Origin: Dimorphilus gyrociliatus
Taxonomy: Eukaryota > Animalia > Annelida
Assembly: GCA_904063045.1 (NCBI GenBank)
Contig: CAJFCJ010000030.1
Coordinates: 372,001 to 436,000, forward strand
DNA length: 64,000 nucleotides
Reading direction: 5' to 3'
Part shown: piece after piece, positions 22,182 to 63,958 of the stretch
How positions within the stretch are numbered: the first letter of the stretch is position 1
Layout: the number at the start of each line of letters is the position of its first letter
Made by a program: the position numbers and the translations under genes
Notes under the pieces: model-generated
Seen by the model: the letters and a program-made list of their open reading frames with translations, nothing else
The model's database searches: none
Told to the model about the DNA's origin: nothing

Positions 22182-23030
22182 AAAAATTTCGCCAACGATC
22201 TAAAAAAAAAGTTTTGATTGCTAACCTTTCAAAAATTACTATCTTATCTACTATTTACTTTCTTACCAATTGTATGACGAAGAGGTAAATAACATAACGA
22301 TTATTTAAACAAAGAAGATGGGAGTCTCTCCCCTCTACTTGTTTCCTTTTTTATAAATTCTTAAGTAACTATTAGCAAAATAATAAAAAGAAGAAGAAGA
22401 AAGAGAAGAAAATAAACTAACAGAATGAAGGGAAAAAATGAAAGGATGGATAGGGAATAATAGAAAGAATGGAATAAGGATATTTTTCCTATCGCCCTCT
22501 CCTGTCCGCCTCCAAAACGTTCAAAAGAGACGTCGATGTATGATTGACGTGCAATTTACACTCGGTTGTTAACACAGATGACAAACGTGTATTTTATATG
22601 CAATTATAGGGCCCACCTTATTCCCTATTATTTTCTCAAGGTTCTTTTTGTTGTTCGCCTTGTTTCCTCAACTTTTAGTCTTGTCCAGTCAATAATTTTA
22701 CTCTTTTTCTTTAAAGACACGTCTTTGCTATTTATACATTTAAAAAAAAAACAATTCTCGATTGGGAATTTATTTTAATGGATCCAAAGTTTCTTTGCTT
22801 TGTAAGAACCTTTTAAAACATGAGACCATTTTAACGGGTTTTCATAATTGAGCTATATAGAGACAAAACTAAGGATATAGAGGGATAAGGAACAACTTAT
22901 CTAATCGATTCTCTATAGGGATTTCGTTTTCTCTTTTATAATAATAGACACTTTTAATATGCCGTAAACTTTTAGTCAATATTTGAAAACAGTATACAAT
23001 ATAGACACATCGAAAAATTAAAGGACCATT
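22182..23030 (+). repeat. Dispersed repeat, copy 2, located between Ig copies B and C
   Basis: Same sequence as 2285-3136 at offset 19897. No TIR, TSD or coding capacity recognised. Confidence 0.9.
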
Positions 23031-24433
23031 AGAATATTCACATACTAATTTATTCATAATCTTTAAAATTTTAATTCATTATAACGATATTAAATAGTAT
23101 ATTAATAATTATACACAACTTTGCTTTGTTCAATCTTTTTAATTTTTTTTTGGCTTATACGTTACATGATGGAATAAGTCAAACAGTAGTGATCTTAATA
23201 GAATAATGAATCATTACTAACACGGAAATGGTTGAAGCCACTGGTTCTTTATATCTATCAATATGAAATCAATAATGGACTACTTCAAAGATAAAATCAT
23301 GATAGAAATAGGTTCTCACTCAGAGATAAACAAACTAGAACTCTGCGTTAAAATTGTTGGTATCAGTAATATCCAAAATGTAAAGAATCCAACTTAAATG
23401 ATGTAAATACCCTTATCAGAATGAGAAAATATTTTAAAGAAACTTCTTTGTTATACTTAAAGTGTTTATTTGACTAGAAATCAAAGAAAAAAGCTTTTTC
23501 TATTTCAATTGAATCAAGTTGAAAAGAATTTATTGTTAAAAGCATAGAATTCAACGAGTTCCTACTATTAGACTGGGTGAAAAGCGAGTTTACTTCCAAT
23601 TTTTATATAAGTTAAATATGTAATAGTTTTGAAACGAAATCTAAAAGTTAATAAAGTTTAATAGTTATTAAAAAAAACTATATATATAAGGTCAAATGCT
23701 AAGTTAAAGAGGATAAAGAGTCTTTATTGAGAAATTGCTCTTTTCCTTTTGTCATAAAATCAAGGATTCGTAAGATTTTGTTTCATCAATTTTTTTCTGA
23801 GATAAGTTTAATCATTAATCACCAATGTTTCAGTACATTACAGAATATATTAAAAATATTGTATTTGCAGTCTTTTCAGAGTCAAATACTTGCAAATTTC
23901 AATAATAAGTAAAAAAGTTTGACAGAAATGTAAATTATCTTTTAATTTTTATATTATACTCTTATTTTATATCCAATTAAATCTCTTTCAACTTTTCGAA
24001 CAGATTTATTATAATCTTCAAATATATTGTCCGAGATAATAATTTTCAAGCTCTTTCAATGATACCATAAAACACTTAAGATGGCGTTAGCATACGATTA
24101 GTTTTTTATAATATTTAAGAATCTTTTTTCGGATTTATTTTTTTATTTTCGTTTTTCTTTCAAGTAAAGTATTTTGTCAACAATTTGTCATACAAAGTTG
24201 AAAATATAAAAACAACTTTTTTCAATCAAAATTGTTTCATATAACCAGAAAAGAATATCAATTATTCACAGATATATAGTATAAAATCATCAGCAGTCTA
24301 TTCAATAGCATTGACAGTGAAAGAGAAAATCATCTTTTTTTTAGTTAAATAACTAGAAAAGTAGTAAAAAAAATAAAAGTCATGTAAAAGAAACAAATCT
24401 AGCAACCATAATTAGTCAATTAATTAGTTGTGT
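23030..24433. repeat. Duplicated 3' flank of the Ig genes (paralogous to about 13377-14673 and, in part, 17057-17506)
   Basis: Colinear blocks, e.g. AGAATATTC..TACTAATTTATTCATAAT at 13377 and 23030, and CAACAATTTGTCATAC in all three flanks. Confidence 0.85.
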
Positions 24434-26426
24434 TCAATGGAAAAGTACACATGTGATAGATGAAAATATAGCAAGTAGGAAAATACTAAATTTTGTTTGG
24501 GTAGCTGATGCTTCTGTGGCTGTCAGAGTGGTTGCTTTAGTGGTTGCTTTGGTAGTTGGTTTGGTGGTTGCTTTGGTAGTTGGTTTAGTTGTCGGAGTGA
24601 TGGTTGTTGGTTCAGGAGCAATGTTAAAAAAGTCTTCGCATTTCGTCATAATCCAGTCGGGAACTATAAAAAATTACATAACAAATTAAGTTACAATACT
24701 TACTCCAATATGTAGTTAAACATACTTGAAGGCAATCCGTCACTTGATGTACAAGTTTCTGGAGATACATTAGGTTCACTCCGATCTGTAATAAAATCTT
24801 TAATTAAGGCTTCTGGAGGGGCTCCAAATTTCATTGAGCACTTGAAGCTATCAAGAACATCATCAGTTACAATAGCACATGCTCCTATTCTTGAAGCTGG
24901 AGCAGAACTGCCGATCATTGGCTCGTCAAAAGTGCCAAAGGTTAACGCCTTGTCGTCCTTATCAGTCATATTAACTTTAGGTGCCCAGTTTCCACTGTAG
25001 TCGTTGAAGCAAAAAGCGAGATTTTGGTTAATACCTAAGTTTGCATGAGTTTTTCTTTTACAGTTTGGTATAGCTATTGAGAAACAAATTAAAGTGAAAA
25101 CGTTGTTTCAATAACATATTGATATATACCCATAGCAACGACAAAAGCTGAATAAGAATCAGTTAAATTGCCGTTTTTAAAACCAGAGCAAGAATATTTG
25201 CCTGTCAGCTGAGTTGTTGTATCCAGAACAGTAAGATCAAAAACGTTTGGCGTTTCGAATCGAAATAGGCTTTTTAAGTGATCATAAACTTCAAATGAGT
25301 TTGTAAGAATCCAACCTTCACCAGTTTGACTTTGAGTAAGTGTATAAGCGCCAGCGTCGTGTTCATTTTCGTTAATATCGTTGCATTTTAATACTGTTGA
25401 TGCGTCAAGTCTGGCAACACTATTGGTTAGTCTCGTATTCTTATCGGGAAGTTTAAGAAATTCCAGACACTTCTCCTTCAAATAAGCTGGTACATTGGTG
25501 TCTACACTGGCGGGATTCTCACAAGTAGTTCCAGAAAATTCTGGAGGCTCATCATGATAACTTTTGTCAAAAACAAGATCATATGGGGGAGCTTCAAAAT
25601 CAAAAGCACATTTGAACGACTCGCCCTTATCAATGAGAGCACAGGCTCCTACAGCTAAAATAAATAACAATCAATTAGTTGAAATCTTTCTATTAAACTT
25701 ATTTTATATACTCGAATATTTAGCGTTTGAAGGACCAGCATTATCATCATGACTTGTAAATTGAGCGAAATTCATGAGATTGTTAGCTGTCTCTATCTTT
25801 ACTCTTGGTGCCCAATTTCCAGCGTATTCCGTATGGCAATAAGCAATATCTTTATTTTGTACATAGTCTTGATTCGGTACATCAACCTTCGCACACTTAG
25901 GAGTTTCATCTTAAAAAAGAAAAATTTTTAAATTTGTCAATACAGTAGTGAAAAACTGGAAGAATACACACCAATTGCTGAAAGATATGCATGATAGTAA
26001 GTGTCTCTGCTGCCATTACGGAACCCTACACATTCATACAATCCAGTTGTATATTCATCTACTTTTGTATTGAGAAGGTGATACGTGTCGTCATCCGGTA
26101 GTTTAAATCTGCTTTGAAGGTGTATCAAGATTTCGTAGTTGTTGGCAATAATATAAGTATCACTGGTTTGACTTGCTTTAAATACCCAATTTGTATATTC
26201 GTAATAACCTGGTGCATCTATAGCTGAGCAATTTAAAAGTGCAGAACTGTCTTTGAATACAGCTGTGTTTACTGGGCGATAGCGAAATTTAGCCCCATCG
26301 CATATTACAATAACTGAAAAACAAAGTTTTTAACTTTCATTTTAAAGTTAGAAATATAATAAAACTTAATAAAAACTCACTGGAGAAAGTAATAAAAATC
26401 CATTGAAATGCTTGGAACTTGAACAT
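24434..26426 (-). CDS. Ig-superfamily GPI-anchored protein, copy C (about 562 aa). Exons: 26381-26426, 25972-26313, 25712-25909, 25130-25654, 24726-25073, 24434-24663
   Basis: Spliced frame is open (1689 nt) with five phase-1 GT-AG introns of 56-67 nt. Ig hallmarks: LLNCSA..TNWVF..YHLLNTKV..TGLYEC and VLKCND..FDLTV..TGKYSC. Two paralogous Cys-rich domains carry YAGNWAP and YSGNWAP. Thr-rich stalk followed by a hydrophobic tail with no cytoplasmic domain (GPI signal inferred). Confidence 0.87.
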
Positions 26427-27190
26427 TTTATCGAGTTCCGTTTGAAAGTCAAGCTGCTTCTGGTCTAACACGACAAATTGTGAAAGAACTGCTTAATTTG
26501 TAGTTGTTTCTAGGTGGCTATAAATTTACATCTTAAATTTACAACTTAGATTAGAACCTTTAATAACCCTATTGTTAAGATTACTTAGCTACTTCAAAAT
26601 AGATAAAATGATGAATAATTAACAATTTTGTATTCTCTTTTTATAAAATTACTATTTTTATATAGATATTGAAAATTGCCAATAGGCAATAATCAAAAAG
26701 AGAGGCTAAGTAAAGAAGTATTTATAACTAAGTCACGAATAAATGAATACAAAACAATGAAAGAGTTAAGAGAAGGATGAAATTTTATTGCAACTTCAAG
26801 TGATGTTACTATGGAAATGTCATCATCATAATTTAAAAGTATTTTCGATATAATTTTAACTTATTGTTTAACAAGTATGTCTATACGGTAAAATAAAAAA
26901 TTCAATATAGTTAAGGTTAAATGAAAACTGCCAAGGTCAATAAAAAAATATTATGAAAGGGGAGGGGGTTTTTGAAAATGTTCAACTTAAAGAGATCAAT
27001 TTAAATTTCGAAGAACCTTAAAAATTTTAAAAAGTAGAAATGTGAACCTATAGGTGGTTAGCTTTGAAATCAGATATCATTTGAATGTTTCCTCTATAAA
27101 CAGCTTTTATGGCAAAAATTTTAGTGTTACCTTTTATCTATTAGATTCCGTTCTTTTGCATTTTATTATAAATATTTAAATTAAGTGTTC
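26427..27190. repeat. Duplicated 5'/promoter flank of the Ig genes (paralogous to about 21407-22170 and 16416-17057)
   Basis: Colinear blocks, e.g. TAAGTAAAGAAGTATTTATAACTAA, AACTGCCAAGG and AAAGAGATCAATTTAAATTTCGAAG, upstream of all three start codons. Confidence 0.85.
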
Positions 27191-28279: not shown

Positions 28280-31200
28280 TTAAGCATTACTAGCTCCTCC
28301 TTGGCTGAGATTAATATAATCATGATTGACATCGTCATGTTTTAAGCTAGGTGGAATTGTAATTGACTTTCGTATTCTGTGGGCAATATCAATAAAAGCA
28401 GGTCTCTTATCGGGATCGAAATTCCAACATTCTCTCATCAATTCATAACTAAGAATAGAAAAAATTCATAAGATAATTTCAAATAAAACAGATAAAAATA
28501 TAAAACTAAAGAAAAGCGGCTGTAAAGAGCCAATTAAATTATAAAGTCATAAAAAATTCTCACATATCATTGGGACAGACTTTCGGTCTAGCTAATTGCT
28601 TTCCAGTAGCAATATGATCATATAAATTTTTATTCTCTATATCTTTATAAGGTATTTGACCCCTTTGAAGTACTTCCCATAGTAATACGCCAAAAGACCA
28701 CTAAAAATATTTCAATTTTAGAGAGTAACCAAAAATAAATAAAGATACTCACAACGTCCGATTTCGATGTGAATTCCATACGTTCTAAAACTTCGATGGC
28801 CATCCACTTAACAGGTAACTTCAATTCTCCTGACTAGTGATTTTATCAAAAATTATAATTATTAATAACTTTTCTTTCAAATTAAAAAACGTAATGTTTC
28901 ACGCTACCGAATTATCTTTTCTCTTCTTTTTGGGATTCTTATATATTTCTTCAGAAAGACCAAAATCAGCTACTTTAACTACTTCGTCCATATCAATCCT
29001 ATAGTATTTTTATAAAATTTTAAATGTTTTAATTAATCATACTATTAAATATTGCTATTTTAATTTTACATACATGCAATTTCTAGCTGCTAAATCTCTA
29101 TGAACAAATCTTAAACTAGAGATATAGGCCATACCATTTGCTATTTGTTCGCCATAGCCTAATAATTGGTTTAAATAGAACGTCTGTAAATTAATTTAGA
29201 GACTATTAAATTATATTTAACTTTGTTATTTCATAAGCTTACTCGATCTTTATGCTTGATATAATTTTTTAAATTTCCTAATTCCATAAAAGGCATAATA
29301 ATCATTGGTGTATCGTAATCCCAAAAAGATACTCCTATTAAAGACAAAACATTCTGATGATGAAACTGGCTCATTATGGCTCCTTCTCTCAATAAACTTT
29401 GCGATAGTGAATCCTCTTTCTCAAAATCACCAAACAACATTTTTATTGCAACTTTTCTCATCTTTTTTTCATTATCCTGATCATCTTTATCTTTTAACTC
29501 GGCAACGTAGACAACACCGTAGTGACCTCTTCCAATTTCATCTTTTAAATTAATTAATTCTTTTGGAACTTGTACATTTTTAATCATTTCTTGCATTCGT
29601 TTTTGAGAATTAGATATTTCTAAAAAAGAGATGTAAAAAGAATATTATTATTCATTACTTATTGTTGGTTTTATTAAGATTAATGTTATTCATGTAGTTT
29701 GTACCTTTTAACCCTTTTTAGGGTATGAATAATAAAAGAGTTAAGTGTTTTATGACTCATTTAGTAAGTATGTTATATACTATATAAATATATACGATAT
29801 ATAATATTTCAATCTTTTTTATGCGCAATTTGATTAAAAAAACACAAAAAAGGGCAAAGAATAAAAAGGAAAGAAGAGACAGGAAATACGAAGTTAATAT
29901 GCTTAGGACGTGTATGTGTGTACTTAGAGATATTCTAACAAAAGAGATTAAGAACGTGTAGGTGGAAAAAATAAAGATAGGAGAGCACACACAATCAAAA
30001 ATAGGCGCAGATTATTTAAATAAATATATAAAATATATATAAATATATATATTTTAGTATATATTAGTATATATATATATATATATAAAAAGGCTATCCA
30101 AACACTAAATATCAGAAATATTCCAATATCTTTTTTATGGCTTATAAGCTATAAAGATAAGAAAAAAATAAATCTAATTTACCCGAAATGTAACCTGGAT
30201 CGTCATCAATATCGTCCATCAAAGGTGGTAATAAGTTAGGTTTCATTAAGGGATGTTGTTGTTCTGAATAGTTTGGATTTTGAAATCTTGTTTCTCGTCT
30301 TGAATTACGATTATAAATATCCAAATCTGCCAAACCAGGTATCTTAGGTTTATTAATATAATGTCTCTTTTTCGGAGAAGGTTTCCTGTACGAAGGTCTA
30401 CGTTTGAATAAAAAACTGATAATTAAAGAGATTTTATATCTACTTTTGACGCTTTCGTAATAAAATAACAGCAGCTATTACAATAGCTAATATAACTGGA
30501 AAACCAACACTTAGACCAACTATTAGACCAATCTTACTTGAACTTTGATTAATAGGCTGTTTCGTTTGTATTTTTATTACTCTGATAGTTTGTAATTTAC
30601 TTTTATATCTTCCCCAAGATATCTGCAAATACAGATTTTATATATTCGAAATATTAAGATTTATAATAAGAGAAGTAAAATTAAATTACCAAAAAAAAGC
30701 AAGCGTTTAAGGCTGTTCTATTTAAAGTATTTTTCTCCAAATCGACAGAACAAAAAGGTAATTCTTCGTTGTAATTAAAGTCACAATTTACATCGCAAAC
30801 TTTAAACTTTACAAGCTTATATTCTTGGTCGGCTTTGAGCATTTTAAGTGAATTACCATCCAACTATTTTAATAAATTATTAAATATAACTGCTTTAAAA
30901 CAAAACATCGTTTTAAACCTACCTTCATATTAAAGTTGAATGATTTTGAAGTATCAGGAATGTCAAATTCTTGCATATGAAGAGTAGTTTTATTTGCTTT
31001 CAGTTGAATTGCTTTTTCTGGAAGTTTATAGAAGCGTAACATAAAATTCTCATTAACAATAACTTTTTCATCGAATTTAAGAACGAATTTTAGTTGTTTT
31101 ATGTCTGATCTTCCTGGTCTTCCGGGCCTTCCTGGTGCTGTAAAAATGATAGAGAAAAAAATTGATTATTAATTTTTCAACAGAAATTATACTTCAACAA

Positions 31201-34200
31201 AAATAGTTTACGTCTAATGTCAAGATTTCTCTTTCCTCTGCTTAAAGGGCTTTTAATACCACCACCAATATCTTTTCTAGAGTCTCTGTCAGGACCACCA
31301 CGAGGAATCAATATTTTTCTATCGAGTATCGGAGTTTTACATTCAACTAATAGGGATGATTGTATTTTACATGTCTAAAGAAAAAAATTAAATATTTTTT
31401 ATTAGACTGTCAGCTATTACAACTGAAAAGAAGATTAACTTACTTCATTGCTTTTAAAATCGGATGAAAGAGATGAAATAATAATATAAGCTGTTTTATA
31501 TAAATCGAAATTGTTTCCATGCAATTTAAGGCTTAATCCACCTCTATAGAGAGAAGAAGAAAAGGAAAAATTAAAACATTTTTCTTTTGCTTATCTACAT
31601 AAAAAACACTGATAATTACTCAAAGGGTGAATAAAATCCAACTGGAAATTGTAAATCTTTAAAAGGTCTAACAATCTTTAAAACTTTTTCAAATGAAAGA
31701 TCAGACTTTACATCAATTTTTATAAAAATTTTGTAATTTCCAGGAACATTAGTATAACCAGTTTCAAATATTATGCAAGTATTGTTGCGGCTAAGTACAT
31801 TAACTGAACTACTATTTAAGTAAACTTCAAGAATTGAACCAGTATCTAAATTCTCTCCAAGGAGAAATACTTTTGAAGGCGCTATAGAGATTTTTTCAGG
31901 ATATACTGATGTTATTGTAACACTTTTTGGTGAGAGAACGTCCAAATAGATATTACTTTCAGTATTTCCCGTAATTTTAATCTTTTCCTTAGACGGTCCA
32001 AAGCTGCTTATGTTAACCGTACAATTAAATCTAAATAAAACAAAGAAAAAGTTTAATTTAAGCAAAATTGAAATTCTAATACTTACGAATAGAAATTAAT
32101 CGAGTTTTGATCAACAATACAACGAAACTGGCCAAATTTAATCGAATTTAACAATTTCATAAAATTTAATCTGTATCCATGTACTTTTACACTCAGTTTA
32201 GTGCTTGCTAATGCCTTAGAAGGTTGGACCTACATATAAGAAAACAAGAGAATTTATAAGTTAATAAAAACTATTAAAACTTGATAACTTACGCCAGTAA
32301 TATTATAACTACAATTATAAGATTCATCAAAATCTTCATCAACGCATTCGCTATCTTCCGTCATAAAGCATTGTCTTTTTAAACAATTATCGCATCCTTT
32401 CATAAATGAACACATGTATAGTTCAACTGTAAAAAAAAAAGAATAATTACTTATTAATTGTGTTTAAATAATAAAAGATACGAAAACTAAATGACTTACT
32501 TATTGACGAAACTTTAAATTCAGTTTTTGAGAAAAAGATTTCCAATTTATAATCAGACATTATATCTTCAACATTTGCGTTAATACTCATATAATCTTCC
32601 TAATGAGATTTAATGTTGTTAGTCTTGGTTTAAATAATTATTAATAATAAAAATTACCTTAATTTTCTTTGAGTTAAATTTGCAACCATTGTGAAAGTCA
32701 CTTCCAACTTCGCTTCGATAAATGTTAGCTTTAATACTTAATTTGCAAAAGTCGACTACTTGATGCTAAATAAGGCAATTATTTTTAAGTTAATAAAAAT
32801 CTATAGATATATAAACAAACCAAAGCTAAATATAAAGGTATTCGTAAAATATCCTCATTTGGTTTTAATATGAAGGATTTGTTCTTTAGCATTACAGATT
32901 CTTCTAGTATAGGGCAAACTTTTAAATTTGGCTGTTTCTGTTTTATGAATAGAATATTATTATACTCGTAAATAATGATAGAAATATTCCTAGCATTAAC
33001 CTCAGGAACAAGTTGACCTTTAGTACATCCGCGTGAATCTTCAACTTTTCCAATGCAATAAGATTTATCAGCATAGGAGCACCAAGAACATAATTCTTGA
33101 TACTGAATACATTCTTCACATGTTCTATTTAAATGTGAAATTAGATAGTTAGATAGTAAAAAATAATTTATACTTCAATATTCCACATGAAAAGATTGGT
33201 ATATTAAATTTCTTAACAATTTCTCCCGTTTTTGAAATATGCAATGTCAAAGTGAAATTATAATAAACTGAAAAAATTAGACAGATTATTAAAACTAAAT
33301 GTATTTATCATAGTAGTTTAATTATGAATAATACACTTACAAATAGAATTGAACTGAGGTAGTCTATAAAATTGACTTCTTCTCCTAAATCTACATTTTT
33401 GAATATTTTTATCAAAGATAAAAGTTCCATTAAATTCACTTAACCACCAGCTCTTTATATTACAGAATATTCCTTTTAAATGATTTTTAGACTTTATCTT
33501 AGAAATAAAAATTGGAATAAGTTAGCATTTATTAAAATTTGAAAAATTTAACCTACTTTATAAATCATTTCCCTCTGTCGACCAAAACTTATTCGAGGTA
33601 CCCTCAAAGAAATTTCACTTGGTATAACAGCTGCATCTTTAACGCAATCCTTAGGAGATTTTGCGAAAGTTTTGTCAATTGAGTTTTTCGAAGTTATCCC
33701 AACACACTTGTGTCTAAATAAGAAAGGAAATATGGAAAAAAAAACAAACATTGATAATCATAATATAAAGAGGCGAGAATGAAAGAGAAAATACTTGTAT
33801 CTTCTCAATGAAACACTAACTCTGGTGGTACGCTAGGATTATCATTCCAATGGCAAAATGCTTGTATACAACTTATGCACATTTTTTCTTGTTGACAATC
33901 AGGAAATGGTATTATCATTGGCTGAAAATATTTGTATATACAACTAAAGATATTTATAAAGATAGTATGTATAGCTTACAGAAAATATACATGGTTCCGA
34001 TTGACAATCAAATATTGATGCAGACAAGTAAATAGTATTTCTATTGTTAAATACTCTCAAACCAGTTGCTTTAAAAGTATGAGTCTTCAAGTTTTTTTTG
34101 TATCCTTTGAGTTGCTTTGACTTTCCATTGTAAAGATACTATTAAAAAACAGATGTAGTTTATGACAAGTATAAAAAAAAATAAATATATATACTACCAT

Positions 34201-35436
34201 GTTAATAAAGCTCTTTTCATTTGCAATAGCTAAATAGTAGTTATCACGAAATCCAGTTATATTTAAGGCAGCTATAGATGTTGGTCTGAAATTTTCCTCC
34301 AGAATGAACACATCATCTGCTTTTTGCTTAGGCAAAAGTAAAAAGTGATTTTTTTTACTAGTCTTTGCGGTAGCTGATTCAAACATTGCTTCTTTCGTTT
34401 TTACCTTTAAAGAAAGATAATAAATCTTATTCGAGTAGAATTTGTGAATCTTTTAACTAATACTCACACAATTCTCCTTATCTACCCTTTCAATATGTCT
34501 TAATTTTGAAATACTTTCTCCTCGATCACATTTACTATTAGTATCCGTTATTATTTTGAATAAATCAGATAAATGAAATATGCAAAGGGCCATTGTTCCT
34601 GATGAACTTTTTGATACCATAAATACAGTTGCTGAATTCTTTTCCTTGGGAAAGAAGATTTGTTCAGCAATGATAGCTTCGTTGAAAGTTTCCAATCCAT
34701 TTATTGTTTCACCTTGACATTCCAATGGCATTTCATTGTAAGAAGTTAAACCGTGGTGGGGTAATATAGTTGATAAAACTGTAACAGTTCTATTACTGTT
34801 ATCAATTAAATTTCTATTTATAATAAAATTAATCAAATTCTCCCCAAATTTTCCAGAAAAAATGGGATTCAATTTAAATCCTTCGAGATTCTTAGCTGGT
34901 CTAATTGAACCACAGTCAGTATAATCAATGGGCGACACAAATGGTATTATATTCTTGATGCAATTGATCAACGACTGATTCGTTGATAAAGGAACATAAG
35001 ATTTATAGTTGTAAACCCTTTCATCATCAGCTTGTAAAAGACTTACAACAGAAACTGAAAATCCTTCAGGTGGGACAAAATCCAAATCTCTGCTAAGATT
35101 CTTATGTACTTTTTTACAAGACAGATGGTCTAATTTATAAACTATGCAATTTTGTTGACTTTGATTAGTTTGTGATCGACCACATATTAAAATATAACTG
35201 GTACTAAAGACCGTTGCTGTTATAGTTGCTTTTGGTAAATTACTATTTTGTCCTTCACAAAAGTTATCGCCATAGTTTCTTGCTTCAAAATTGGCTTTAC
35301 TAAAATATATATCTTTATCGAACACAAAAAGTGTACGATCTTTCTTCGAAATATCGTAAAAGTTACGAATATAGGTTTTTTGGCAGTAGCAAGTGTGACA
35401 GAGAACAATACTTATCCAGAATAATAACTTTATCAT
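28280..35436 (-). CDS. Met-family receptor tyrosine kinase with complete plexin-type ectodomain (Met-LP-like): signal peptide, Sema, 3 PSI, multiple IPT/TIG, TM, tyrosine kinase
   Basis: ATG at 35436 ([18 protein letters not shown]). Sema exons 34468-35436, 34198-34404, 33980-34138. PSI motifs [17 protein letters not shown] (33821-33921), [15 protein letters not shown] (33001-33124), [18 protein letters not shown] (32293-32426). [32 protein letters not shown] (30444-30622). Kinase exons 29243-29619 ([14 protein letters not shown]), 29074-29183 (HRDLAARNC), 28908-28998 (KVADFGL), 28753-28833 ([14 protein letters not shown]), 28564-28700 (WSFGVLLWE), 28280-28448 ([15 protein letters not shown], stop). 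Some IPT exon boundaries at 30680-31560 were not fully resolved. Confidence 0.9.
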
Positions 35437-36067
35437 CCCTATCAAAAGATAAAAATAGTGTAATTAGTAATTTAATGCATCAAGTAAGTCTTCACTACAA
35501 AAAAATATACTTTGGATAACTTTTTTTGTTCTTAAAACTAAATAAAAAGTAAAATAATATGTAGTCAGGCGTTCGCACACTGATAAACTCAATAATGTAT
35601 TTATGAACATTCGATAAGTGTATATAATAGCTGCCAATTAGTCCATTAGACTATGTTGGTCCACCTTCATTATGACTCATTGAATGATTCAAGCTTATTC
35701 TATATAGCTTAAACAGCAAACACAAGTAAGGAAAAACAAAAGTGGAATTCGACCGTTCTACAAGCTGTCGGCCAATTTTGTTTGACGGTCGCTGATATCT
35801 TATCTCTTAACGGTCAACCGGTACTGTTCTGTTCACGAATTATCAGAACCGCACGAAATTGTCAAAGAGTTTGTGAATAAGCACTCAATCAAGTAGTATT
35901 TACAGTTTTCACTTACCGACTAGCAATATTTTTCAATTCAAAACTATTAAAATATTTTCAATCCTCTAAAAAGTTGTTTTCATATCTAAATTAATTATGA
36001 ATAAGGGTAAAATCGTATTAAAACATGACATCCGCTTTAAAAACACAAAAGATTAAGTTCTATATGT

Positions 36068-36080
36068 CCACTAGATGGCA
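36068..36080 (+). promoter_or_regulatory. Candidate CTCF-type motif in the RTK-plexin intergenic region
   Basis: CCACTAGATGGCA matches the CCASYAGRKGGCR core. Motif match only. Confidence 0.35.
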
Positions 36081-38039
36081 TAAATTATCGTAAATTTTTT
36101 AATCCTTGTTTATTTCAATATTTGTTATTGAATTAATCTTTAAAAGTTTTCGATGGATCAGAATATAGTTGACATGATAAATTGGTTTAAGAAAATTCAA
36201 TGCATATACCTAGATTTAAGACAAAGAGCATTAAAAATATTTGCGAGTTGTACCCATATCTTGGTGGTAGGGTGCTAATAAACATCTCAAAAGTTAATAA
36301 TAATATCAATTACTCATTTAATATTAGAATAAAATGATATTATGTATGTCATTTATGTTTAATAAACAATAAACATTTATTTTGAATAGAAATAAGAAAT
36401 CTAGATTTTCTTTATGACGGTTTTAAATTCTAGCCGGAAGAGGCGCTGTGTTTTTGCGATAGTTTTTCACTATTCACCCGACCACAGACAATGTCATTCA
36501 CAATCTCCTGTCGGCGAAGCCGCAATTACACAGGCTGCTCGTGACGGTTTAAGCGTCGAAAATTTCATTTACTCGTACCACCTTGGCCGTTTATTTTCTT
36601 ATTTACTTTTCTACGGATATTTAGCCTCATTCTTTGAATATTTTGAACTTTTTTTAAAGAAGAAAGCACTATTATTGGAGATAGAAAACAAGTGGCGTTT
36701 TATTTGCCGCTTATATCGTTCAACTTCTTCATTGACAGAAAACTAGGCCATTTTAAGGTCTAACTAGAAAATGTTTTACCGTGAGTATAGAATTCTCAAA
36801 ATATTTCAAATCTTACGTAAGGCCTAGAAATTACGTTTTGACTCACCGGTCCATCTTCAACTTCGAATTGAATACACCTGTACGATAGTATGCTTTTGGC
36901 CTATACTAATATTACGCAAGATCCTTTATTTTTTTATTTTCTTTTTTTAAAAAAAATACATAGTTGTTAACTGCTTAATCCTTTTTGTATATTGCCCCCT
37001 TATCTGTTTAAGGTGACCAGAAGAATTTATAGATGAGCATTTCTCTCATCAAAAGTAGTTTATTTACGACGATAACAGCCGTCAAATTGTTTAAATAGCG
37101 ATTCTGTAATGTGTATTTTGTCTTAAATTTTCTAAAGTTTTTCATCCCTTTTTTTAAATTTTTTCCAAAAGATAAATATTTCACATTTTTACTTTCAGTT
37201 TAAGTTTATATCTTGTTTTTTTAAAAAAAAAAATATTCATGAAATTTGAACAATTTGTAAATGGGCGGAGAGGTACGGAAAATTGTTGATAAAATATCTT
37301 GAAATTTACATAAGTCAACAGTCTCATAAACTATACGTCGTTTCATTAACTGAATAAACAAGAGTCGAAATCCATTAGTAAATAATGCGTTTAATAAGAT
37401 CAAAGAAGGAAATCGTATCGTAAATCTGCCTTTAATCCTGACAAGATTTTTTGTTAATAGTCTAACAAAGCGAGAACAAGTTATAATAGGAGAGTTTCAA
37501 TGAAGAATTCGTTTAAAGAGATTTTTAATGCCGTATTCAACGGTTGTTTATATAGTGAGAACGCTTCAACATTTTGCATCCTGTCGCTAGATTTCATAAG
37601 TAAATAACATATTTCATAGGCCGAGAGGATTAGTATTACACCATATATTTGGGGGCTTGTTTAATGGGATTTCCTACTAAGTTTCCCGTTTTATCTTTTC
37701 GTATGAGCAAGATATCAGTATTTGTATAATGTTAGGAAAACATTGTAACTTTTCTTTTGGCTTTTGCATCTCTTCCTCCTTAACTTTCGCTCTTCTATTT
37801 AGATATTTCCCAGTCCACTAATTAAAGGATTAATCAGTAAACTTTCATTTTTTATCATCAATGTTGTGTAGTCTAAAATAAGAAGATGGGTGGACAGGAT
37901 TGAACTGTCATTAAACACTTCATACTGGTTCCAATTGTGTATATCTTTTTCGTAATTTAAGACGGCTATATGTTGGAATTTAGATGAAAATCTCTTTTTT
38001 TCAGATCTACAACCGGGCGAGTGCAATCGGCAATAAAAG

Positions 38040-41000
38040 ATGAAGAAACGTTTTTATATAGGCCTTTTCTTTCTAATTGAATCGGCTTTCAACGATCAAC
38101 AACTAAGGGCGCCCTCCTACAATTACGTAAATGGAATCTTCAAAGCCGAAAGTGAAATTGTCAAACATGTTGTCTACAAAGACAAAATCCTATTGGGCTT
38201 GGAAGGTAATATTACAGTCATAGACCAAAAACTACGGTACAGTTATAGCGTCCGATCGAACCCGGATAGTACATCGTCAGAAGAATGCTATCCGAAAAGC
38301 ATGATCGTTTATAGTGAAGGGAGAGAATTGATCTTATGTTGTACATCTAATAAGGGTAGTTGTCACAAGAGGAAATTGAACGGCAGATTGTCGTTGAGCG
38401 ATGACTACGCTAAGAGCGAGGGTGAAATTGTACCCTGGACTAAAAATAGTAGCTGTTTAATGGTTATAGCAAAAGGACCTGGTTCACGAACGTACGCTTA
38501 TGTAGCTAACACGTTACCACAAGATACTGATGTTCAACTCTCAGTTGTCAGCCGTAGGAATTTGGAAAACTTTCAAATAGTCTCCGGCAGCTTTTTCTTT
38601 GATCGCCCCGTTCTGCAAGCAAAGAAATACAATGATCCCAATGCCGATACATTCGAAGAACGTAATATACACTTCTGGTACATTAAAACCTTTACAGCCT
38701 TTAATTTTGTGCATTTTTTGGTTGTGGAACCTCTTCGATTATCTAGCTATAATGTGTTCGTCACTAGAATACAAAGGATTTGTATGCAGAATAAAAACTT
38801 TAATACACACGCTGAATTGGACTTAAAGTGTTATTATAATGGAACGGAACATAATATTGTAACATCTGCCTATATTGGCCGTGGAGGTGAAAAGCTTCAA
38901 AAGTATCTAGAACTACCTCATGTAGAACCGTTCTCAGATGATGCCCTTGTATTGTTTGCCACATTTTCTAGAAGTGCACCTTTCTCTGCTGTCGAACAAC
39001 CTGGTAGTGCCGTTTGTGCCTACAGACTAAGGGATATTCGTAAATCTTTTACAAAAAATATAAAGGAGTGTTACAATGGGATAGGAACATGGGGTCCTGA
39101 TTATTTTACAAGTCAACCTCAAAATTGTATAGAGCATCCAGAAAAAATTGACGATACGTCTTGTCCTAACAAGAACAAGCACATACTTGGAACTCAACCC
39201 TTAGTTTCTACTACTCAACTTTACATTCCCAATCACATCGTCTCCTCAATCGCCGTAACAACCGTTGACAAACATACAATAGCTTTCATGGGAACTAAAG
39301 CTGGCATAATTCTAAAGGTAAGCATATAGTTTCCCAACAGGATTTTCAGCGCATTACTAGTGTTAGTCAATATAGATATTGATGACTAAAAGCTGATGAG
39401 CTTCAACCGTTCTATAAATCCTCATTGACCATAGCGTATAAAAGGGCGTCTAATCTATTTACTCTAGCCGACCACTGTTTTTTATTCAATAATTTTTTAT
39501 ACGGTGGCTGTGCAAAGTTTGTCTTTATAAAGAATGTTAGCAATTTTCAAAGTACCGTCCCCTTTATTACATTCATTGAACACCGGAACTCGGAAAGGTC
39601 CGAAGCCGTTATCGACCTCCGAACTTCCGGTACTTATTGTCTCTGCCTTTTGATCGATGAATAAAAGAGCGGCTGTCTCCAAAATTTTTTATTTATATAA
39701 ATATACCAAGTTTTTAATTAGTGGAATAATCTCTACACTTATCGCAGTAGTTAGAGATCTATTTTACACTTTGAACGAGGAGAATATCCTAGTTAATCCC
39801 TTTCCAACTTAATTAGCTATCCTGTAACTGGTTGCGAACTCTTTTAAATATGTATCAATTAACCGTACCCGATTATATTAGTCATAACTTGACTATTACT
39901 TTCATTGTTGAAAGGATGTTGTGAGAGGATAAAAAATATAAACGAATCAATCATGCAAAAAATGAAAAGAAAAGAATGAATGATAGAGTTATTATCCTCC
40001 ATGATAGTAGTATATACAGATAAAAAAACATAGAATACACTATAGTTGAAGAAAGTACGAAATTTCTCTTATTTCCTTAACTTTTATAGAGCGTCATCTC
40101 GAGCAAAAATAGTGGCGAATTATATGAAACGATAATGATGGAAGAGAAGAGGGAGCCTATTCTCAGCGACGCCTTCTTCTCAGACGATAATCAGTATTAT
40201 TATGCAGCCAAAGGAAATACGGTGAGTGGTCTTTTTCTTTACTTAACTAATCTCTCTGCTATCTGCTTCTTTTTAACCCTTGTCGAAAAAAGGCCTAGAA
40301 CGTATAAATGTTTTTATCTCCTAGAATGGTTGAAATAGAGAGAATGCGTATATACTTGGCATATGCAGCTCTTTCCAGAGCAGACAAGGCGTTCTCTGGG
40401 TGTGTTGTGTATTTAATGGCATCGAGCAGTTGCTTAATGTAAACAACATTTTTAGGTTACTAAGCCTAAAAGTGAGAAAAAAGGGGGTGAAGGTGTGGGA
40501 GGAGTATGTTAGGTAAAAAAAATTAACTGTAAATGAATTCCTACACATTGAATGACAAGGGAACAGAAAAAGGTGAATGTAGTTGGCAATGATCTCGTAC
40601 ATGCGTATCGAATGTTTCTCTTAGCACAAAGGAGACTTTTGTTTGTGCAGGCACGTACATCCTCGTTTTGTCATATTTTTCTAACTCGGTCGTCCAATAC
40701 ATTGTCTCTTCCTTTATTAATACCTATATTAATTGGTTGCTTTCATTCTATAAAGTTCATTGAGTCATTTCTATAAAATTATGATATATTTCTATAAATC
40801 TATTTTGAGATATAGTTCGTTAGCTATAACTCACTTAACAATAAACTCGACTGTAACCGGTAGTCAATATAGGGCCTATAACGTCTGACCTTGATTGTAT
40901 ACCTATAAAACTCCCTAGCCTTATAGGCCTCATTTAAGGCTTAAGGGAAAATATGCGATGGCGTATTGAACTTGTTTGCTAACGTTTATTTTTCTTCTGC

Positions 41001-44000
41001 GGCTTGTTTTTGTTATATTCCAAGGATTATTGTTTATTCAACGTATCCCTTTGCCCTTATTAAGTATTCGGCAAGCGTCCCTACTTACGTAAAAATATTG
41101 TTTGCTTTATTCCTATTTAAAACATATCGGATAATAGACGCTTTTATTTAAGCGTTTAAAAACTTTGAAAAGAGAGGAAGTGGTTGAAGGATGTAGAGAA
41201 TAACATTTGCATTTTGTCGTATTCCCTAACTCTGTATTCTCAATTGATTTTCTCCGTCCTCACTTTATTTTGTTTATTGTTTTTCCTAGTCGTTCATCCT
41301 CATTCGTTCTCCTTTCTTATTGAGTGTTTCGTGAAGCGCATAGTTACGTTACTATAGCAACACAAAACCAGCCCCCGTACTTAAAGGAAAACTGCCGAAA
41401 TCTGTCGACATTTTCACACTAGAGACCTTTTATTGACTTGCATATTTTTAACATTGGCGCCACTTTTACATTATCTATACATGCACCAAATCATCACAGA
41501 CAATGAAAAGTATTGTATATCCGTTCATATGTTGAATAATATATCAATAGAAATCCCCCATCCCAGTTTTTTGCCCATGTTTTGTTGTCCCTTAGCCGCG
41601 ATCCGTCTGGTAAAAAAGGATTATGTAATACTTAAAAGGGTGAGGGAGACTAAAAGCCATAAAACACTATACGGGATAAGGAAAAGATCCTCGATTCAAG
41701 CGAATGTATAATTAATTAGAGAACGTGCCGAACAGTGTAGAAAACGAGAATGCTGTGCAATTGTATGTATAAAAACCGTTCTTAGTTAGACAAACAAACG
41801 CCGTACGACTTTTAACGTTTGTCAATAGTTGCACGTGCAAAAAATTTTTTTCGGCATTTCCCCTTGTTCATATTATTGCGGAAGTGAAACAGTAGAAGAA
41901 TTTCTTAATTAGAAATCTCAACTGTATTTAACACAGTTCCTAAAGTGGTTTTCATGGTTAAGATATCAAAGAAATAGCAATTAATAGTACAATGATAAAG
42001 AAATATATACTGTATACAGTAGATATAAGTATATACATATATATATAAACAATGTATGTTGTAAAGTTACATATTTATATAAATATATCAAGATATTGTG
42101 TTTATTGTATACAATATATAGATTAGTAAATACATGTATATAAATAATAAAGAGAGATAAAAATGTACATTATGATTCACCTGAGAAAAATAGCGCAGTT
42201 GTTGAAAAAAAAACAAGAAAACTACAAGAATAAAAGAAGAAAATTGGTTATTCTATACTTCTTCTATATTTCAACGTGGAAATTTTCTATCGTAGAACTT
42301 AAGTATAAACTATTCTATCCGAACTAATGTTACGTATATCGTATTCACTTATATAGTCTTTTATGAAAGCCGACTTCTATTATTATTCAACAAGCTAAAT
42401 TTATTTACAAAACTGAAATAATTATAAGGTATTTTATTAGCTTCATAGAATGACATTTTACGCTCGATTAATATATCTTAGATGTTTATTATCTTATAGA
42501 AAACTTTTGTACGAAATATTCCTACTAATGTTCTTTGAACTATTAGATAATTTCATTTATGAATTAACTATAATTCAATTTTTCATTATGAATTTTTCTA
42601 TTTTTAGAACGATTATTTACTGTGTTATATAAGAGAACTAGACGAAAAAAACAACCTATTTACAATGTATATTTGTATATATATATTCAATAATGTTAAC
42701 TTTAATGATTTTTACAAAAAGTAATAGTTTCTAAAGGGAAACAATACAATATAAATCTAATTAATTTCAGAATAGAAATCAACAAATGATTTCGCAGTTT
42801 AACAGAGCAAAGAGTAACTCTATAGTAGTTTTTATCAATAAACTATAAAAAAAAACCTTACGTTTCCTGCAACAGTGATTTCTCCTTCTAACAAAGTACT
42901 ATATATAAATATTAGTATTTATACGCGCACAATCTATAGAATATACCGTACTTTACTTTAGAATATATATATAAATGTGTCTAATGATTTCGGAGAAGTA
43001 GTTCTTATTATTATCGCTTCGTTTCTTCTTGTACTTATATATAAGAAATATTATGTGCTGTTTTCTCTTTTTTGTATGGTGAACGACTTACGAGTATAAT
43101 TATGGAGAGTAAAAAAGATACGTTTAGTCTAGGTTAGCTCTGTTATTTCACCTAGGAATGCGAAATTTTGAGAAATGAACCGCCAGTTAATGGCATTTTG
43201 GCTCCTCCACCTCTCCCAAAAGAAAGATTGTATCCAGAATAGTAAAAGAGGTTACGAGAAGGAAAGTGAGAGTAGAGTTTTTTTTTGCAGATAATATTAA
43301 CGCTGTCTGTCTGATTTGGTAAGCCGGCTCGTAAGTTTTCTTAGCTTACTCAATGAGTGGCAGAGGAGAAGATGAGTTTTAGGGCGTGAAAAAAAAGGAA
43401 ATGGACGATTTGTTGATCTAAGTTAGTGCTGGGAGATTTTTTCTTCAAGCTTGCTTTCTTTGAAAGAATTATGAAGCGAAGAAGAGAGAAATCGAGTAAA
43501 ATCGTTAACGAGAATTTAAACGCTCCAAGTACTCTTCATAAAGAAATAATGTATATAGAACGTTGAACACCGGAATCGTTCTTAATATGGGCATTGGAAT
43601 TTCTCGTAGCGTAAAAAATTCCCCCTATCCGCAGCTCGAATAATGTATTAGACGCCCTCCTCCCCCTTTAACGGCCGGCTAGCTATACAGTAGCAAAGTA
43701 TAAGAAATCACGTGATCGGTGCTGAAGAAAGTAAGTAACCGATACCCATTAATATCAGTCGTCACCCAGCTGTTGTATTCGGACAACTGAGCTTGATGAA
43801 CGGAGTCTGAGAAACTATCCCCAACGCTCAGCGCGATTAGTCTAATGAGTTGAAGCACGACTTGATAAAGCTAACAAAAACAATACGGAATCTAATTACA
43901 AGCCGCTAAAAGATTATTATCGGATTGAGAGGAAAAAACGATTTTAAGGCGAAAAAAGATTTTGATTGTCGAAGAAGGCACGTAATTAAACTAATCACTT

Positions 44001-62000: not shown

Positions 62001-63958
62001 ATAGCGTCTACCCAACAAATCAGAATTGAAGTTGAAGCAAATAAATTATTGGTAAGTTCTATAAATAAAATTAAATACAAATATCTAAAACGATGATTTA
62101 TTATTAATTTTTTTATTTTACCCCTACTAAAACCTTCTACTTAGGATTTTCAAACGGATTTGCGTTGTGTTTTTATGGAAGAAGGGAGAAATGAGTATTT
62201 AAAAGCTCGTAGAAAAGGCAATAAAATCGAATGCGATACCAAAAGAGTATGTATTGCACATTTAATATATCTATATATACCATGTATTTACAGTATATAA
62301 AAATACTCATGTATCAAACGTAGATTGTACTTAAAAATTCTAAGAAGATTTACTGTTTATAGTAGTTTTAATGTCTGTTACGCAAGAGATTAGGTAACGC
62401 TTTGGCGATTGTGTTCGGTTGACTTATCTCTTCGTAAATAACTATTTACTAAGTTAAGTAGAAAGAAATTGATAAATTCTAACAAAAATACAAAAAATAC
62501 AAAGACAAAAATCAATAGCAATCATCTTAAAAGAATGTAATATAAACAAGTGTATATTAAAAAGAATACAGCTTTGCAGTCTCTTGAAATATGAATACAT
62601 AGCTTAAAGATTAGAACAAGTTGCGTGATGCTCTACTTTTCGCTTTTACAGTTTATATATAGACAAACTTTCATAGTTATATAGTTTCTTTTATCTTTTT
62701 ACCTATAATATCTCTTTCTCCTATTTATTAGTTCTCGTATAAAGAAGTCGTAGCCGAAATGCACATTCCTTTCAAAATTGTTTGGGGAAGGGATAAATAT
62801 CCTATCGACAATCCACAAAATATACAAGGTTAGCATACAAAGATTCTTATCTTTGAGTTATTAAGCTCCTATATATGAAATTGTTTTCATTCATCAAGTC
62901 AATAAATTTCTATCGTATTTTAAATAAATAAATTTTTCAACTTGCTCCTTTTCTCCTACAGTAACAATATACAAATGTTCATTGTCGGTAAATTGTGGTG
63001 AATGTCTCGCTCTATCTTTACAAAACAAATTATGTGGTTGGTGCGTAAGAGAGAAACGTTGTTCAACTAAAACAAAATGTTCAGAAGGGAGAGGAGAGTT
63101 TTTAAACAGCGAACAAACTTGCGACAATCCTAAGGTAAATATAAAAAAATTTGATATATTCGATTGTCACTAGATAGTATCCTATTTCGTAAAGTATTAA
63201 CCTTCGCTAAAGATTATCCTACCGCTTTACTCAATATTTTTCCCCTATACTATCCGTCTTCCTTTTCATTTTCTATTTATCTCCTTCTGATTTTCTTTCC
63301 AACGTCTATCTTAATTTCTATTTATATACTTATAGACTATTAATAATTTTATTCATCTCTTTTATAGATATTAGACTTTGAGCCAAAATACGGCCCGTTT
63401 GGAGGAGATACCAGTATTGTTATAACTGGTATGAATTTGGGTAAAAGCATTGATGAAATAGAAGTGTTCGTTGCTGGTAAAAGATGCAATGTGATCGATT
63501 ACAAAAGACCCAGTACGATTACTTGTAAAAATGCTCCTTCAGTTAAGGATAACGAAAGTGGACCAGTATTGGTAAAAGTAGCCGGAAAATACAAGGCAAA
63601 ATCAAAAAATCCCTTCACGTACGTGGTAAGTATTAGCTCCTTTTTTACACTCTTGTAAATAACAGAGGTGAAAGGGAAATGAAAAAAAAATTAAAAGTGG
63701 AAAGAGAAAAGGGCGGTAGGTAGGAGGGTAGTGGGTGGGTAGATAGGTTGGTTGGTGTGAAAAAAATTAGGTGTTAAGATATTGACTACTTTATTAGTTA
63801 CTAACTGTGTTTTTTTCCTAGACACCTACTGTGAATAAAGTGGAACCATCGATTGGGCCTCGCTCAGGTGGTACGAAAGTAAAAATCTCTGGAGAATACT
63901 TAAATATCGGAACAAAGAAGACTGTGAAAATTGGTGATCGTCTTTGCGAAATAATCAG
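38040..63958 (+). CDS. Plexin (plexin-B-like), 5' part only; gene continues past the window end. Exons: 38040-39317, 40090-40221, 53715-53945, 54727-54904, 61234-61324, 61678-61792, 61920-62051, 62145-62246, 62732-62828, 62962-63134, 63368-63625, 63822-63958
   Basis: Signal peptide plus Sema domain (LILCCTSNKGSCHKR, FVTRIQRIC, HAELDLKC, SAVCAYRLRDIRKSFTKNIKECY). PSI1 CSQYDSCQTCLESNDPFCGWCSLENKCS, PSI2 CTQCTTSSHPCTWC, PSI3 IYKCSLSVNCGECL..CGWC, then IPT domains (FEPKYGPFGGDTSIVITGMNLG; VEPSIGPRSGGTKVKISGEYL). All junctions are GT-AG and phase-compatible. The B-type call rests on the remembered similarity of VLVTG...GPANCP after PSI2 and is less certain. Confidence 0.93.
41348..41361. promoter_or_regulatory. 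Candidate RFX X-box in plexin intron 2
   Basis: GTTACTATAGCAAC fits GTHNYY-AT-RRNAAC. Single motif match with no functional support. Confidence 0.2.
45118..46770 (-). mobile_element. Tc1/mariner superfamily DNA transposon (Tc1 family, DD34E), full length 1653 bp, inside plexin intron 2
   Basis: Imperfect TIRs of about 36 bp (left CAGCCGCGGTCATAAATATCTATACATGAAAAAAAA from 45118; right end reverse-complements to CAGCCGCGGTCAAAAATGTTTATACATGAAAAAAAA, ending 46770). TA on both flanks. Internal transposase present. Confidence 0.95.
45436..46428 (-). pseudogene. Tc1-family transposase interrupted by one in-frame TGA (46060-46062)
   Basis: The two track ORFs (46060-46428 and 45436-46011) are in the same frame, separated only by a TGA plus 16 codons. 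N-terminal HTH region (GRP motif, LSERTIRRIL). Catalytic motifs VFTDESRF, FQQDNAPPH, WPPYSPDLNPIENLW, with 34 residues between the second D and the E by hand count. Confidence 0.9.
48396..48893 (-). CDS. Hypothetical 165-aa protein nested antisense in plexin intron 2
   Basis: Longest track ORF not explained by any other feature (179 codons from TTG, 165 from ATG 48893), in a locally less AT-rich segment. No family recognised with confidence. Confidence 0.35.
   Translation of the reverse strand: MEVYRLISLKPLLEKGNNENFEVDADLTPIHLFNEMKDGLSGPVQSAWLKGNTRKGGGTKKNEVRDSDRASYLTHFFLRTSKYLNFFIGSTPVSLLHFKQEIRRHFPSAYRNTTLIDLNAVSICNEKLSDVTFDLISRDETATRNFMTRAKSCVRSLHSCDTLMS

Follow-up and report, generated by a model that had tools for sequence, protein, structure and literature searches.

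A 64,000-nucleotide stretch of the genome of the annelid Dimorphilus gyrociliatus (contig CAJFCJ010000030.1, positions 372,001 to 436,000, i.e. G000:C30:372001-436000; hereafter the window), taken from an assembly of 77.9 Mb in 349 contigs, contains two genes arranged head-to-head with 2.6 kb between them: a receptor tyrosine kinase (RTK) on the minus strand and a plexin, PLX1, on the plus strand. With a probability of about 0.8, judged from sequence, the RTK is a receptor of the Met-LP type, in which a complete plexin-type ectodomain is combined with a Met-like kinase; its ectodomain exons would come from an intron-rich Plexin-A-like gene, with the join in or just after the transmembrane (TM) exon. 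New here is an intron map for Met-LP, including four more introns shared with a plexin than an earlier note on this DNA had listed, as far as the exon that precedes the TM exon.

Gene model of the RTK

The RTK extends from its ATG at 35436 to its stop codon at 28280 on the minus strand. Its order is signal peptide, Sema-like region, PSI1, IPT1, PSI2, IPT2, PSI3, four IPT, TM, juxtamembrane region, tyrosine kinase and C-terminal tail. Exons were checked by their conservation in a related species (the relative), represented by the Logan contigs L001 (14.7 kb), L006 and L010. L001 retains the same head-to-head RTK/plexin pair. The RTK exons, with lengths in nucleotides (nt) and flanking intron phases, are as follows.

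28280..35436, minus strand: whole RTK gene, 26 exons, ~1,621 codons; frame open and phases identical in the window and L001
34468..35436, minus strand: exon 1, 969 nt, 3' end in phase 0; signal peptide and most of a very divergent Sema-like domain
34198..34404, minus strand: exon 2, 207 nt, 0-0; encodes Sema blades 6/7; the intron on its 3' side is the partner of plexin intron 1
33980..34138, minus strand: exon 3, 159 nt, 0-0; last part of Sema; partner of the plexin 132-nt exon
33921-33821 (101 nt) and 33713-33557 (157 nt), minus strand: exons 4 and 5, sum 258 nt, 0-0; PSI1 and start of IPT1; separated by an RTK-specific phase-2 intron and jointly the partner of the plexin 231-nt exon
33341..33497, minus strand: exon 6, 157 nt, 0-1; IPT1; partner of the plexin 178-nt exon
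33174..33267, minus strand: exon 7, 94 nt, 1-2; end of IPT1 and first Cys of PSI2; partner of the plexin 91-nt exon
33001..33124, minus strand: exon 8, 124 nt, 2-0; PSI2; partner of the plexin 115-nt exon
32937-32821 (117 nt, 0-0), 32765-32658 (108 nt, 0-0) and 32599-32500 (100 nt, 0-1), minus strand: exons 9-11; IPT2; partners of the plexin 132, 102 and 97-nt exons
32293..32426, minus strand: exon 12, 134 nt, 1-0; PSI3; partner of the plexin 173-nt exon
30444..32229, minus strand: exons 13-19, 143, 411, 100, 73, 191, 174 and 179 nt; IPT3-6 and TM
28280..30385, minus strand: exons 20-26; juxtamembrane part, tyrosine kinase domain (kinase exons of 377, 110, 91, 84, 137 and 169 nt), then a YxN-containing tail

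The introns following exons 1 and 13 are RTK-specific. The junction of exons 16 and 17 (~31302/31113) is the least certain of the model. For all 26 exons, L001 contains an orthologous exon that is flanked by AG/GT, agrees in phase and differs in length only by multiples of three; in both species a single frame extends from the start ATG across the TM segment to the stop codon of the kinase. The introns of the two RTK genes are unalignable.

It is extremely improbable that this structure is an artefact of the gene model, with short RTK exons picked to fit, or with ectodomain and kinase belonging to two genes. The exon models were drawn from genomic sequence and several exons are without Pfam support, but open, same-phase exons for the entire series in a species whose introns cannot be aligned, indels confined to multiples of three, purifying selection in every segment and the single frame in both species argue against such an artefact.

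Domain composition of the RTK ectodomain

As read from sequence, the ectodomain of the RTK is of the complete plexin type, with three predicted PSI that alternate with IPT and four further IPT after them. The earlier note had described the three interleaved PSI; cysteine patterns and a collinear profile alignment bear this out, with Pfam thresholds for PSI not reached. An hhalign comparison of the two RTK orthologs with the two plexins of the genome yields a single collinear alignment that covers the signal peptide through IPT3 in 750 columns (probability 91.5%, E 8.8e-7, 20% identity), inside which RTK residues 2-445 are collinear with the plexin Sema region. Blade 6/7 carries a plexin-like SIA motif. 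Three Cys-rich PSI-type segments are located at the positions of plexin PSI1-3; the second has the full CxWC pattern, and the first and third each lack one Cys of it in both species. Exon 8, which encodes the second, gives a weak Pfam match to PSI_integrin (E 0.0035) and a BLASTP match to plexin PSI2 (E 0.002). The spacers between these segments are IPT-sized, exon 14 is a TIG match in Pfam, and ~390 residues after PSI3 align with plexin IPT3-6. Exon 19 (30622-30444) then encodes the TM helix, ~23 hydrophobic residues followed by RKRQ, which is kept in the relative and aligns with the plexin TM. Language-model features of exon 1 lie nearest to Sema clusters (score 0.94), which is a lead only.

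Intron positions shared with PLX1

PLX1 begins at 38040 on the plus strand and leaves the window, its continuation being locus L005. Its exons are as follows.

38040..39317, plus strand: exon 1, 1278 nt; signal peptide and most of Sema; Pfam Sema E 1.6e-19; 85% identity in the relative
40090..40221, plus strand: exon 2, 132 nt, 0-0; end of Sema; 95% identity in the relative, same acceptor site
53715-53945 (231 nt) and 54727-54904 (178 nt), plus strand: exons 3 and 4; PSI1 and IPT1; Pfam PSI E 1.7e-11, TIG_plexin E 9e-10
61234-61324 (91 nt), 61678-61792 (115 nt), 61920-62051 (132 nt), 62145-62246 (102 nt), 62732-62828 (97 nt) and 62962-63134 (173 nt), plus strand: exons 5-10; end of IPT1, PSI2, IPT2 and PSI3; Pfam PSI_PlexinA-B, TIG_2 and PSI
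63368..63958, plus strand: exons 11 and 12, 258 and 137 nt; IPT3 and start of IPT4; Pfam TIG
Beyond the window (L005): IPT4-6, TM exon and RasGAP exons; Plexin_cytopl E 4.6e-82

Twelve of the 18 PLX1 exons are confirmed in the relative with identical lengths, namely exons 1-2 (L006) and those from the 97-nt exon through the TM exon (L010). Exons 3-8 are supported by Pfam matches, frame continuity and matching exons of the second plexin, in which the 91-nt exon has a 94-nt counterpart.

The nine exon pairs for which the earlier note had given lengths and phases were all recovered as AG/GT-bounded open exons, with joined frames open in both genes. RTK and PLX1 have in common the phase series 0-0, 0-0, 0-1, 1-2, 2-0, 0-0, 0-0, 0-1, 1-0. 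Spliced models were aligned by MAFFT and hhalign without intron information. In a four-sequence MAFFT alignment, all ten PLX1 introns between the last Sema blade and the end of PSI3 have an RTK intron of the same phase, at offsets of 1, 12, 6, 2, 1, 4, 5, 4, 0 and 3 columns; the hhalign offsets for the same introns are 12, 3, 4, 2, 1, 4, 4, 4, 0 and 3 columns. A permutation null, in which RTK introns were placed randomly and phases shuffled, gives the following for these ten introns.

Tolerance of 2 columns: 4/10 observed, null mean 0.50, P 0.0006
Tolerance of 6 columns: 9/10 observed, null mean 1.19, P <5e-5
Tolerance of 12 columns: 10/10 observed, null mean 2.26, P <5e-5

Agreement at unambiguous landmarks is tighter than these alignments imply. 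The phase-0 intron before PSI1 is located 8 residues ahead of the first Cys in both RTK and PLX1, and the phase-1 intron before PSI3 splits the codon 5 residues ahead of the first Cys in RTK, PLX1 and the second plexin, PLX2. For the phase-1 intron of IPT1, the register matches the following strand in RTK and plexin. The phase-2 intron of PSI2 interrupts the codon 2 residues before the second Cys in both RTK orthologs versus 1 residue in both plexins, at equal Cys spacing. The claim that the introns fall at homologous residues stands as a correspondence far beyond chance, and falls short as to exact residues, for which coincidence can be demonstrated in only three of the ten, with one further intron shifted by a codon.

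Four further shared introns follow RTK exons 14, 15, 17 and 18 and correspond to plexin introns 13, 14, 16 and 17. In an intron-blind three-sequence alignment these pairs have identical columns and phases:

Further pair 1: just before the GG of IPT5, phase 2
Further pair 2: one residue ahead of the next Cys after the IPT5 GG, phase 0
Further pair 3: inside IPT6, phase 0
Further pair 4: before the stalk/TM exon, phase 0

The first two of these pairs are, like the three landmark introns above, anchored exact matches. The IPT6 and pre-TM pairs are alignment-dependent, shifting by 7 and 19 columns in the four-sequence alignment. In total, 14 of the 17 PLX1 ectodomain introns have a same-phase RTK partner. 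Across the whole ectodomain, 3/17 introns match exactly (null mean 0.12, P = 0.00025), 6/17 match within 2 columns (null mean 0.57) and 11/17 within 6 columns (null mean 1.40).

The TM exons end differently: that of the plexin has 253 nt including a juxtamembrane helix and ends in phase 1, that of the RTK has 179 nt and ends in phase 2. Downstream of them no introns of RTK and plexin correspond. These two features place the boundary between the plexin-like and kinase-like parts in or just after the TM exon. The shared map halts where the GAP exons of the plexin and the kinase exons of the RTK start, as would be expected if a plexin ectodomain plus TM segment had been joined to a kinase.

Intron positions in other genes of the genome

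Plexin_cytopl is found in the genome only in PLX1 and in one gene of contig C6. The latter is the one other plexin, PLX2 (5516700-5524600, minus strand, loci L008/L009). PLX2 has single exons for the end of Sema, PSI1 and half of IPT1 (1.5 kb), for PSI2 and part of IPT2, and for PSI3 and IPT3. It possesses five of the ten introns from the last Sema blade to PSI3, i.e. those in the middle of IPT1, inside PSI2, two in IPT2 and the one before PSI3. The other five are absent, as is, judged from its open frames, the intron before the GG of IPT5, so that PLX2 lacks at least six of the 14 introns shared by RTK and PLX1. The Sema domain of PLX2 is too divergent for the whole-genome Pfam Sema scan; its first large exon matches plexins of the PDB at residues 322-492 only. 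Three semaphorin genes encode the end of Sema and the PSI in one exon; of the shared introns, the two on either side of the last Sema exon can be checked in them, and neither is present. Judged by PLX2 and the three semaphorins, the intron positions of RTK and PLX1 are not generic hot spots. The contrast with PLX2 leaves a sister relationship of RTK and PLX1 unproven, because intron loss is documented in D. gyrociliatus (PMC7854359).

Chance or convergence, with introns accumulating at similar places such as domain borders or preferred insertion sites without shared ancestry, is very improbable. Such an explanation could draw on the low identity of ~20%, the one codon shift and the majority of pairs that cannot be aligned to the residue. 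It has to account, however, for ten matching phases out of ten, for P<5e-5 at 6 columns and, with the whole ectodomain considered, P = 0.00025 at zero tolerance, and for the many shared introns that lie within domains and not at borders; moreover, PLX2 and the three semaphorins have the same Sema-PSI junction without these introns. The proposal of the earlier note that a plexin-derived ectodomain was joined to a kinase is hence supported by a non-random intron series which, among the Sema-domain genes checked, is limited to RTK and PLX1.

Several observations weigh against a plexin-derived ectodomain as set out above. On the side of the domains, Pfam calls neither Sema nor PSI on the RTK exons, the yield being one TIG (exon 14) and a sub-threshold PSI. 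Exon 1 has no match in Pfam or the PDB, and a phmmer search with it against 1.84 billion representative proteins returns the ortholog of the relative (46% identity) as the sole match; the AlphaFold2 model of this exon, built from a two-sequence alignment, has a pLDDT of 33 and is unusable. The domain calls of the RTK derive from profile-profile alignment, cysteine patterns and the language-model lead. On the side of the introns, about one third of the paired introns are shown to be residue-coincident: the PSI2 intron is displaced by one codon, with the RTK upstream of the plexin position, and the remaining paired introns are situated in indel-rich loops, where the alignment does not resolve single residues. 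No partner exists for plexin introns 11, 12 and 15 or for RTK introns 1 (Sema), 4 (PSI1), 13 (IPT3) and 16; plexin intron 15 and RTK intron 16 lie 3 columns apart with different phases, the RTK junction concerned being the least certain one. Splice junctions are predicted from the genomic sequence, and the intron comparison is confined to genes of D. gyrociliatus and one relative, within which ancestral and derived states are not separable.

Divergence and age of the gene pair

Pairwise identity is 20.3% between RTK and PLX1, 19.3% between RTK and PLX2 and 23.7% between PLX1 and PLX2. With RTK hardly nearer to PLX1 than to PLX2, it is not a recent copy of its neighbour. Between the RTK orthologs of the two species, synonymous divergence (dS) has reached saturation, at 1.3-1.8. 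Non-synonymous divergence (dN) is 0.42-0.51 in the RTK ectodomain (omega ~0.25-0.4) and 0.088 in the kinase (omega ~0.06); PLX1 exon 1 has a dN of 0.084 and a proportion of synonymous differences (pS) of 0.44. The RTK ectodomain is therefore ~5x faster than the plexin at non-synonymous sites, and every segment is under purifying selection. The pair of RTK and PLX1 predates the split from the relative and is probably much older. These data do not single out PLX1 as the donor, nor do they date the joining event.

An unlikely alternative is a recent, lineage-specific origin, in which an inverted tandem copy of PLX1 arose in the dinophilid lineage, captured a kinase and diverged fast, so that the RTK would not be an ortholog of Met-LP. 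The head-to-head position at 2.6 kb, kept in the relative, speaks for such a history, as do the at least six introns common to RTK and PLX1 and absent from PLX2, the fast ectodomain (dN 0.42-0.51 vs 0.084 in plexin exon 1) and a sequence search that detects no ortholog beyond the one relative. Nevertheless, the identities given above place RTK no nearer to PLX1 than to PLX2, the pair is older than a split with saturated dS, Met-LP of the same architecture occur in another annelid and a mollusc (PMC6374515), and intron loss in D. gyrociliatus could explain the sparse structure of PLX2 (PMC7854359).

The preferred origin, a plexin-derived ectodomain in a Met-LP-type receptor, would comprise the following steps. 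The ectodomain exons would descend from an intron-rich Plexin-A-like plexin gene, of which 14 of 17 intron positions and phases would have been retained, and the junction of plexin-derived and kinase-derived parts would lie within the TM exon or immediately behind it. The duplication would be old, the RTK ectodomain having then evolved fast under purifying selection. By analogy with plexins and MET, the ectodomain may bind a semaphorin-like or other ligand, and dimerisation may activate the kinase, with the C-terminal YxN recruiting adaptors.

Kinase domain and tail

The kinase exons match Pfam PK_Tyr_Ser-Thr (E 9e-20 and 2.6e-12), follow the TM and are 86% identical to those of the relative at the amino-acid level (dN/dS ~0.06), with intact catalytic motifs; the RTK is without the RasGAP domain of plexins, and its frame stops ~50 codons past the kinase domain. 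Among PDB matches, the N-lobe ranks nearest to MET (E 1.7e-14), followed by Mer/Tyro3 (~1e-11) and RON (1e-10), the margin of MET over the TAM kinases being modest. In place of the YY pair of MET, the activation loop (window 28908-28998) carries one Tyr and after it a basic run, KKKRK here and KKKKK in the relative; since the lone Tyr and the basic run are conserved in two species, they are not a sequencing error.

The C-terminal tail is poorly conserved apart from a Tyr-x-Asn (window 28283-28330; L001 ~14440-14496), which reads YINL here and YVNL in the relative and is similar to the docking Tyr through which MET binds Grb2. The nearest paralogs of the kinase N-lobe in the genome are located at C21:456238-456558, C12:915398-915763 and C4:345316-345633 (34-36% identity). 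A canonical Met (Sema, one PSI, four IPT, kinase) was not seen, in that no Sema match of the genome shares a contig with the C21, C12 or C4 kinase matches.

Comparison with known receptors

In MET and RON, a single PSI is combined with four IPT. The RTK resembles them in its kinase N-lobe, closest to MET in the PDB, its intact catalytic motifs, the C-terminal YxN and the predicted N-terminal Sema-PSI; it differs in having three PSI-type segments and about six IPT, and one activation-loop Tyr with the KKKRK run in place of YY. With Plexin-A (PLX1; Plexin-A1/A2/A4, Drosophila PlexA) the RTK shares the order of the ectodomain and, in the case of PLX1, 14/17 introns. In contrast, identity to PLX1 is ~20%, the cytoplasmic part is a kinase and not a RasGAP, four introns are RTK-specific and three plexin-specific, and PLX1 possesses very long introns (13.5 kb, 6.3 kb) versus mostly ~50-110 nt in the RTK.

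Met-LP receptors are reported in Lophotrochozoa and Echinodermata (PMC6374515, Junqueira Alves et al. 2019, Sci Rep 9:1970), as the earlier note had stated, with genes of like architecture in another annelid (Capitella) and a mollusc (Aplysia). Their description drew solely on protein architecture and on a Sema/PSI tree with weak support. The lophotrochozoan Met-LP are grouped there with lophotrochozoan plexins, on the branch to which the Plexin-A clade belongs as well; in the published scenario a plexin acquired a kinase, and independent origins are proposed for Lophotrochozoa and Echinodermata (PMC6374515). The words "intron" and "exon" are absent from that paper, which holds no intron analysis, and a non-exhaustive literature search found no earlier comparison of intron positions between plexins and Met or Met-LP. 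The intron map is compatible with the published branch assignment; the number of origins is beyond its reach.

The RTK agrees with Met-LP in the complete plexin-type ectodomain (a predicted Sema, three PSI, six IPT), the single TM, the Met-like kinase and the lophotrochozoan host, and it adjoins a plexin gene, as do Met-LP1 and Plexin-B1 in the starfish Acanthaster (PMC6374515). It differs in an ectodomain too divergent for Pfam Sema and PSI, and in a neighbour that is Plexin-A-like and arranged head-to-head. Assigned by architecture, not by orthology to the Capitella and Aplysia genes, the RTK adds a new and very divergent member to a class already described, and the intron evidence adds a modest new supporting detail.

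The neighbouring plexin and other features of the window

By sequence, PLX1 is classed as a true plexin of the Plexin-A-like kind. The best PDB match of its exon 1 is Plexin-A1 (E 2.8e-26); the label "Plexin-B-like" was dropped, Plexin-B1 reaching E 2.7e-7. Word searches with exon 1 and the IPT3 exon return only the open reading frame (ORF) itself and that of the relative, in a length window that excludes full-length plexins and Met-LP.

A single block of 4.7 kb (window 37228-41922 vs L006 9189-13914) has 85.6% nucleotide identity to the relative; it reaches from the region upstream of the plexin through exons 1 and 2, with intron 1 between them, into the beginning of the 13.5-kb intron. Because plexin exon 1 itself has a pS of 0.44, the non-coding part of this block is better read as constrained; it looks like constrained non-coding sequence, with regulatory elements possibly present in the large plexin introns. 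A "hyper-divergent haplotype" for the RTK (85.6% on the plexin side vs unalignable RTK introns) was set aside in view of the same pS. The intergenic part nearer to the RTK (window 35522-37131) has 73.7% identity to the relative, between the plexin-side and RTK values, and may be a candidate shared or bidirectional promoter.

Further features of the window are:

45436-46428, minus strand: two adjacent ORFs (191 and 122 amino acids), Tc1/mariner transposase-like, with a DDE-type motif region; situated in the 13.5-kb PLX1 intron between exon 2 and the PSI1 exon
14660-26430: tandem family of Cys-rich/Ig-like ORFs and Thr/Pro-rich stalk ORFs, upstream of the 3' end of the RTK

A 13.5-kb intron with such transposase-like ORFs is atypical for this compact genome, with its reported median intron of 66 bp.

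Significance

For the D. gyrociliatus genome alone the result is confirmatory and not surprising. The exon structure of the RTK ectodomain matches an intron-rich Plexin-A-like gene, and neither PLX2 nor the semaphorins. It is quite unlikely that the head-to-head pair is the preserved birthplace of lophotrochozoan Met-LP, formed by an inverted Plexin-A-type copy that received a Met-type kinase after its TM exon, with a pairing ancestral to Bilateria. If this were true, the pair would, together with the starfish adjacency, argue against two independent origins of Met-LP, and the 14 shared introns, with at least six of them absent from PLX2, would be a character set for tracing the event. Intron positions are characters independent of the fast-evolving protein sequence. 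Intron maps of the Capitella, Aplysia and Acanthaster genes could decide between one origin of Met-LP and two.

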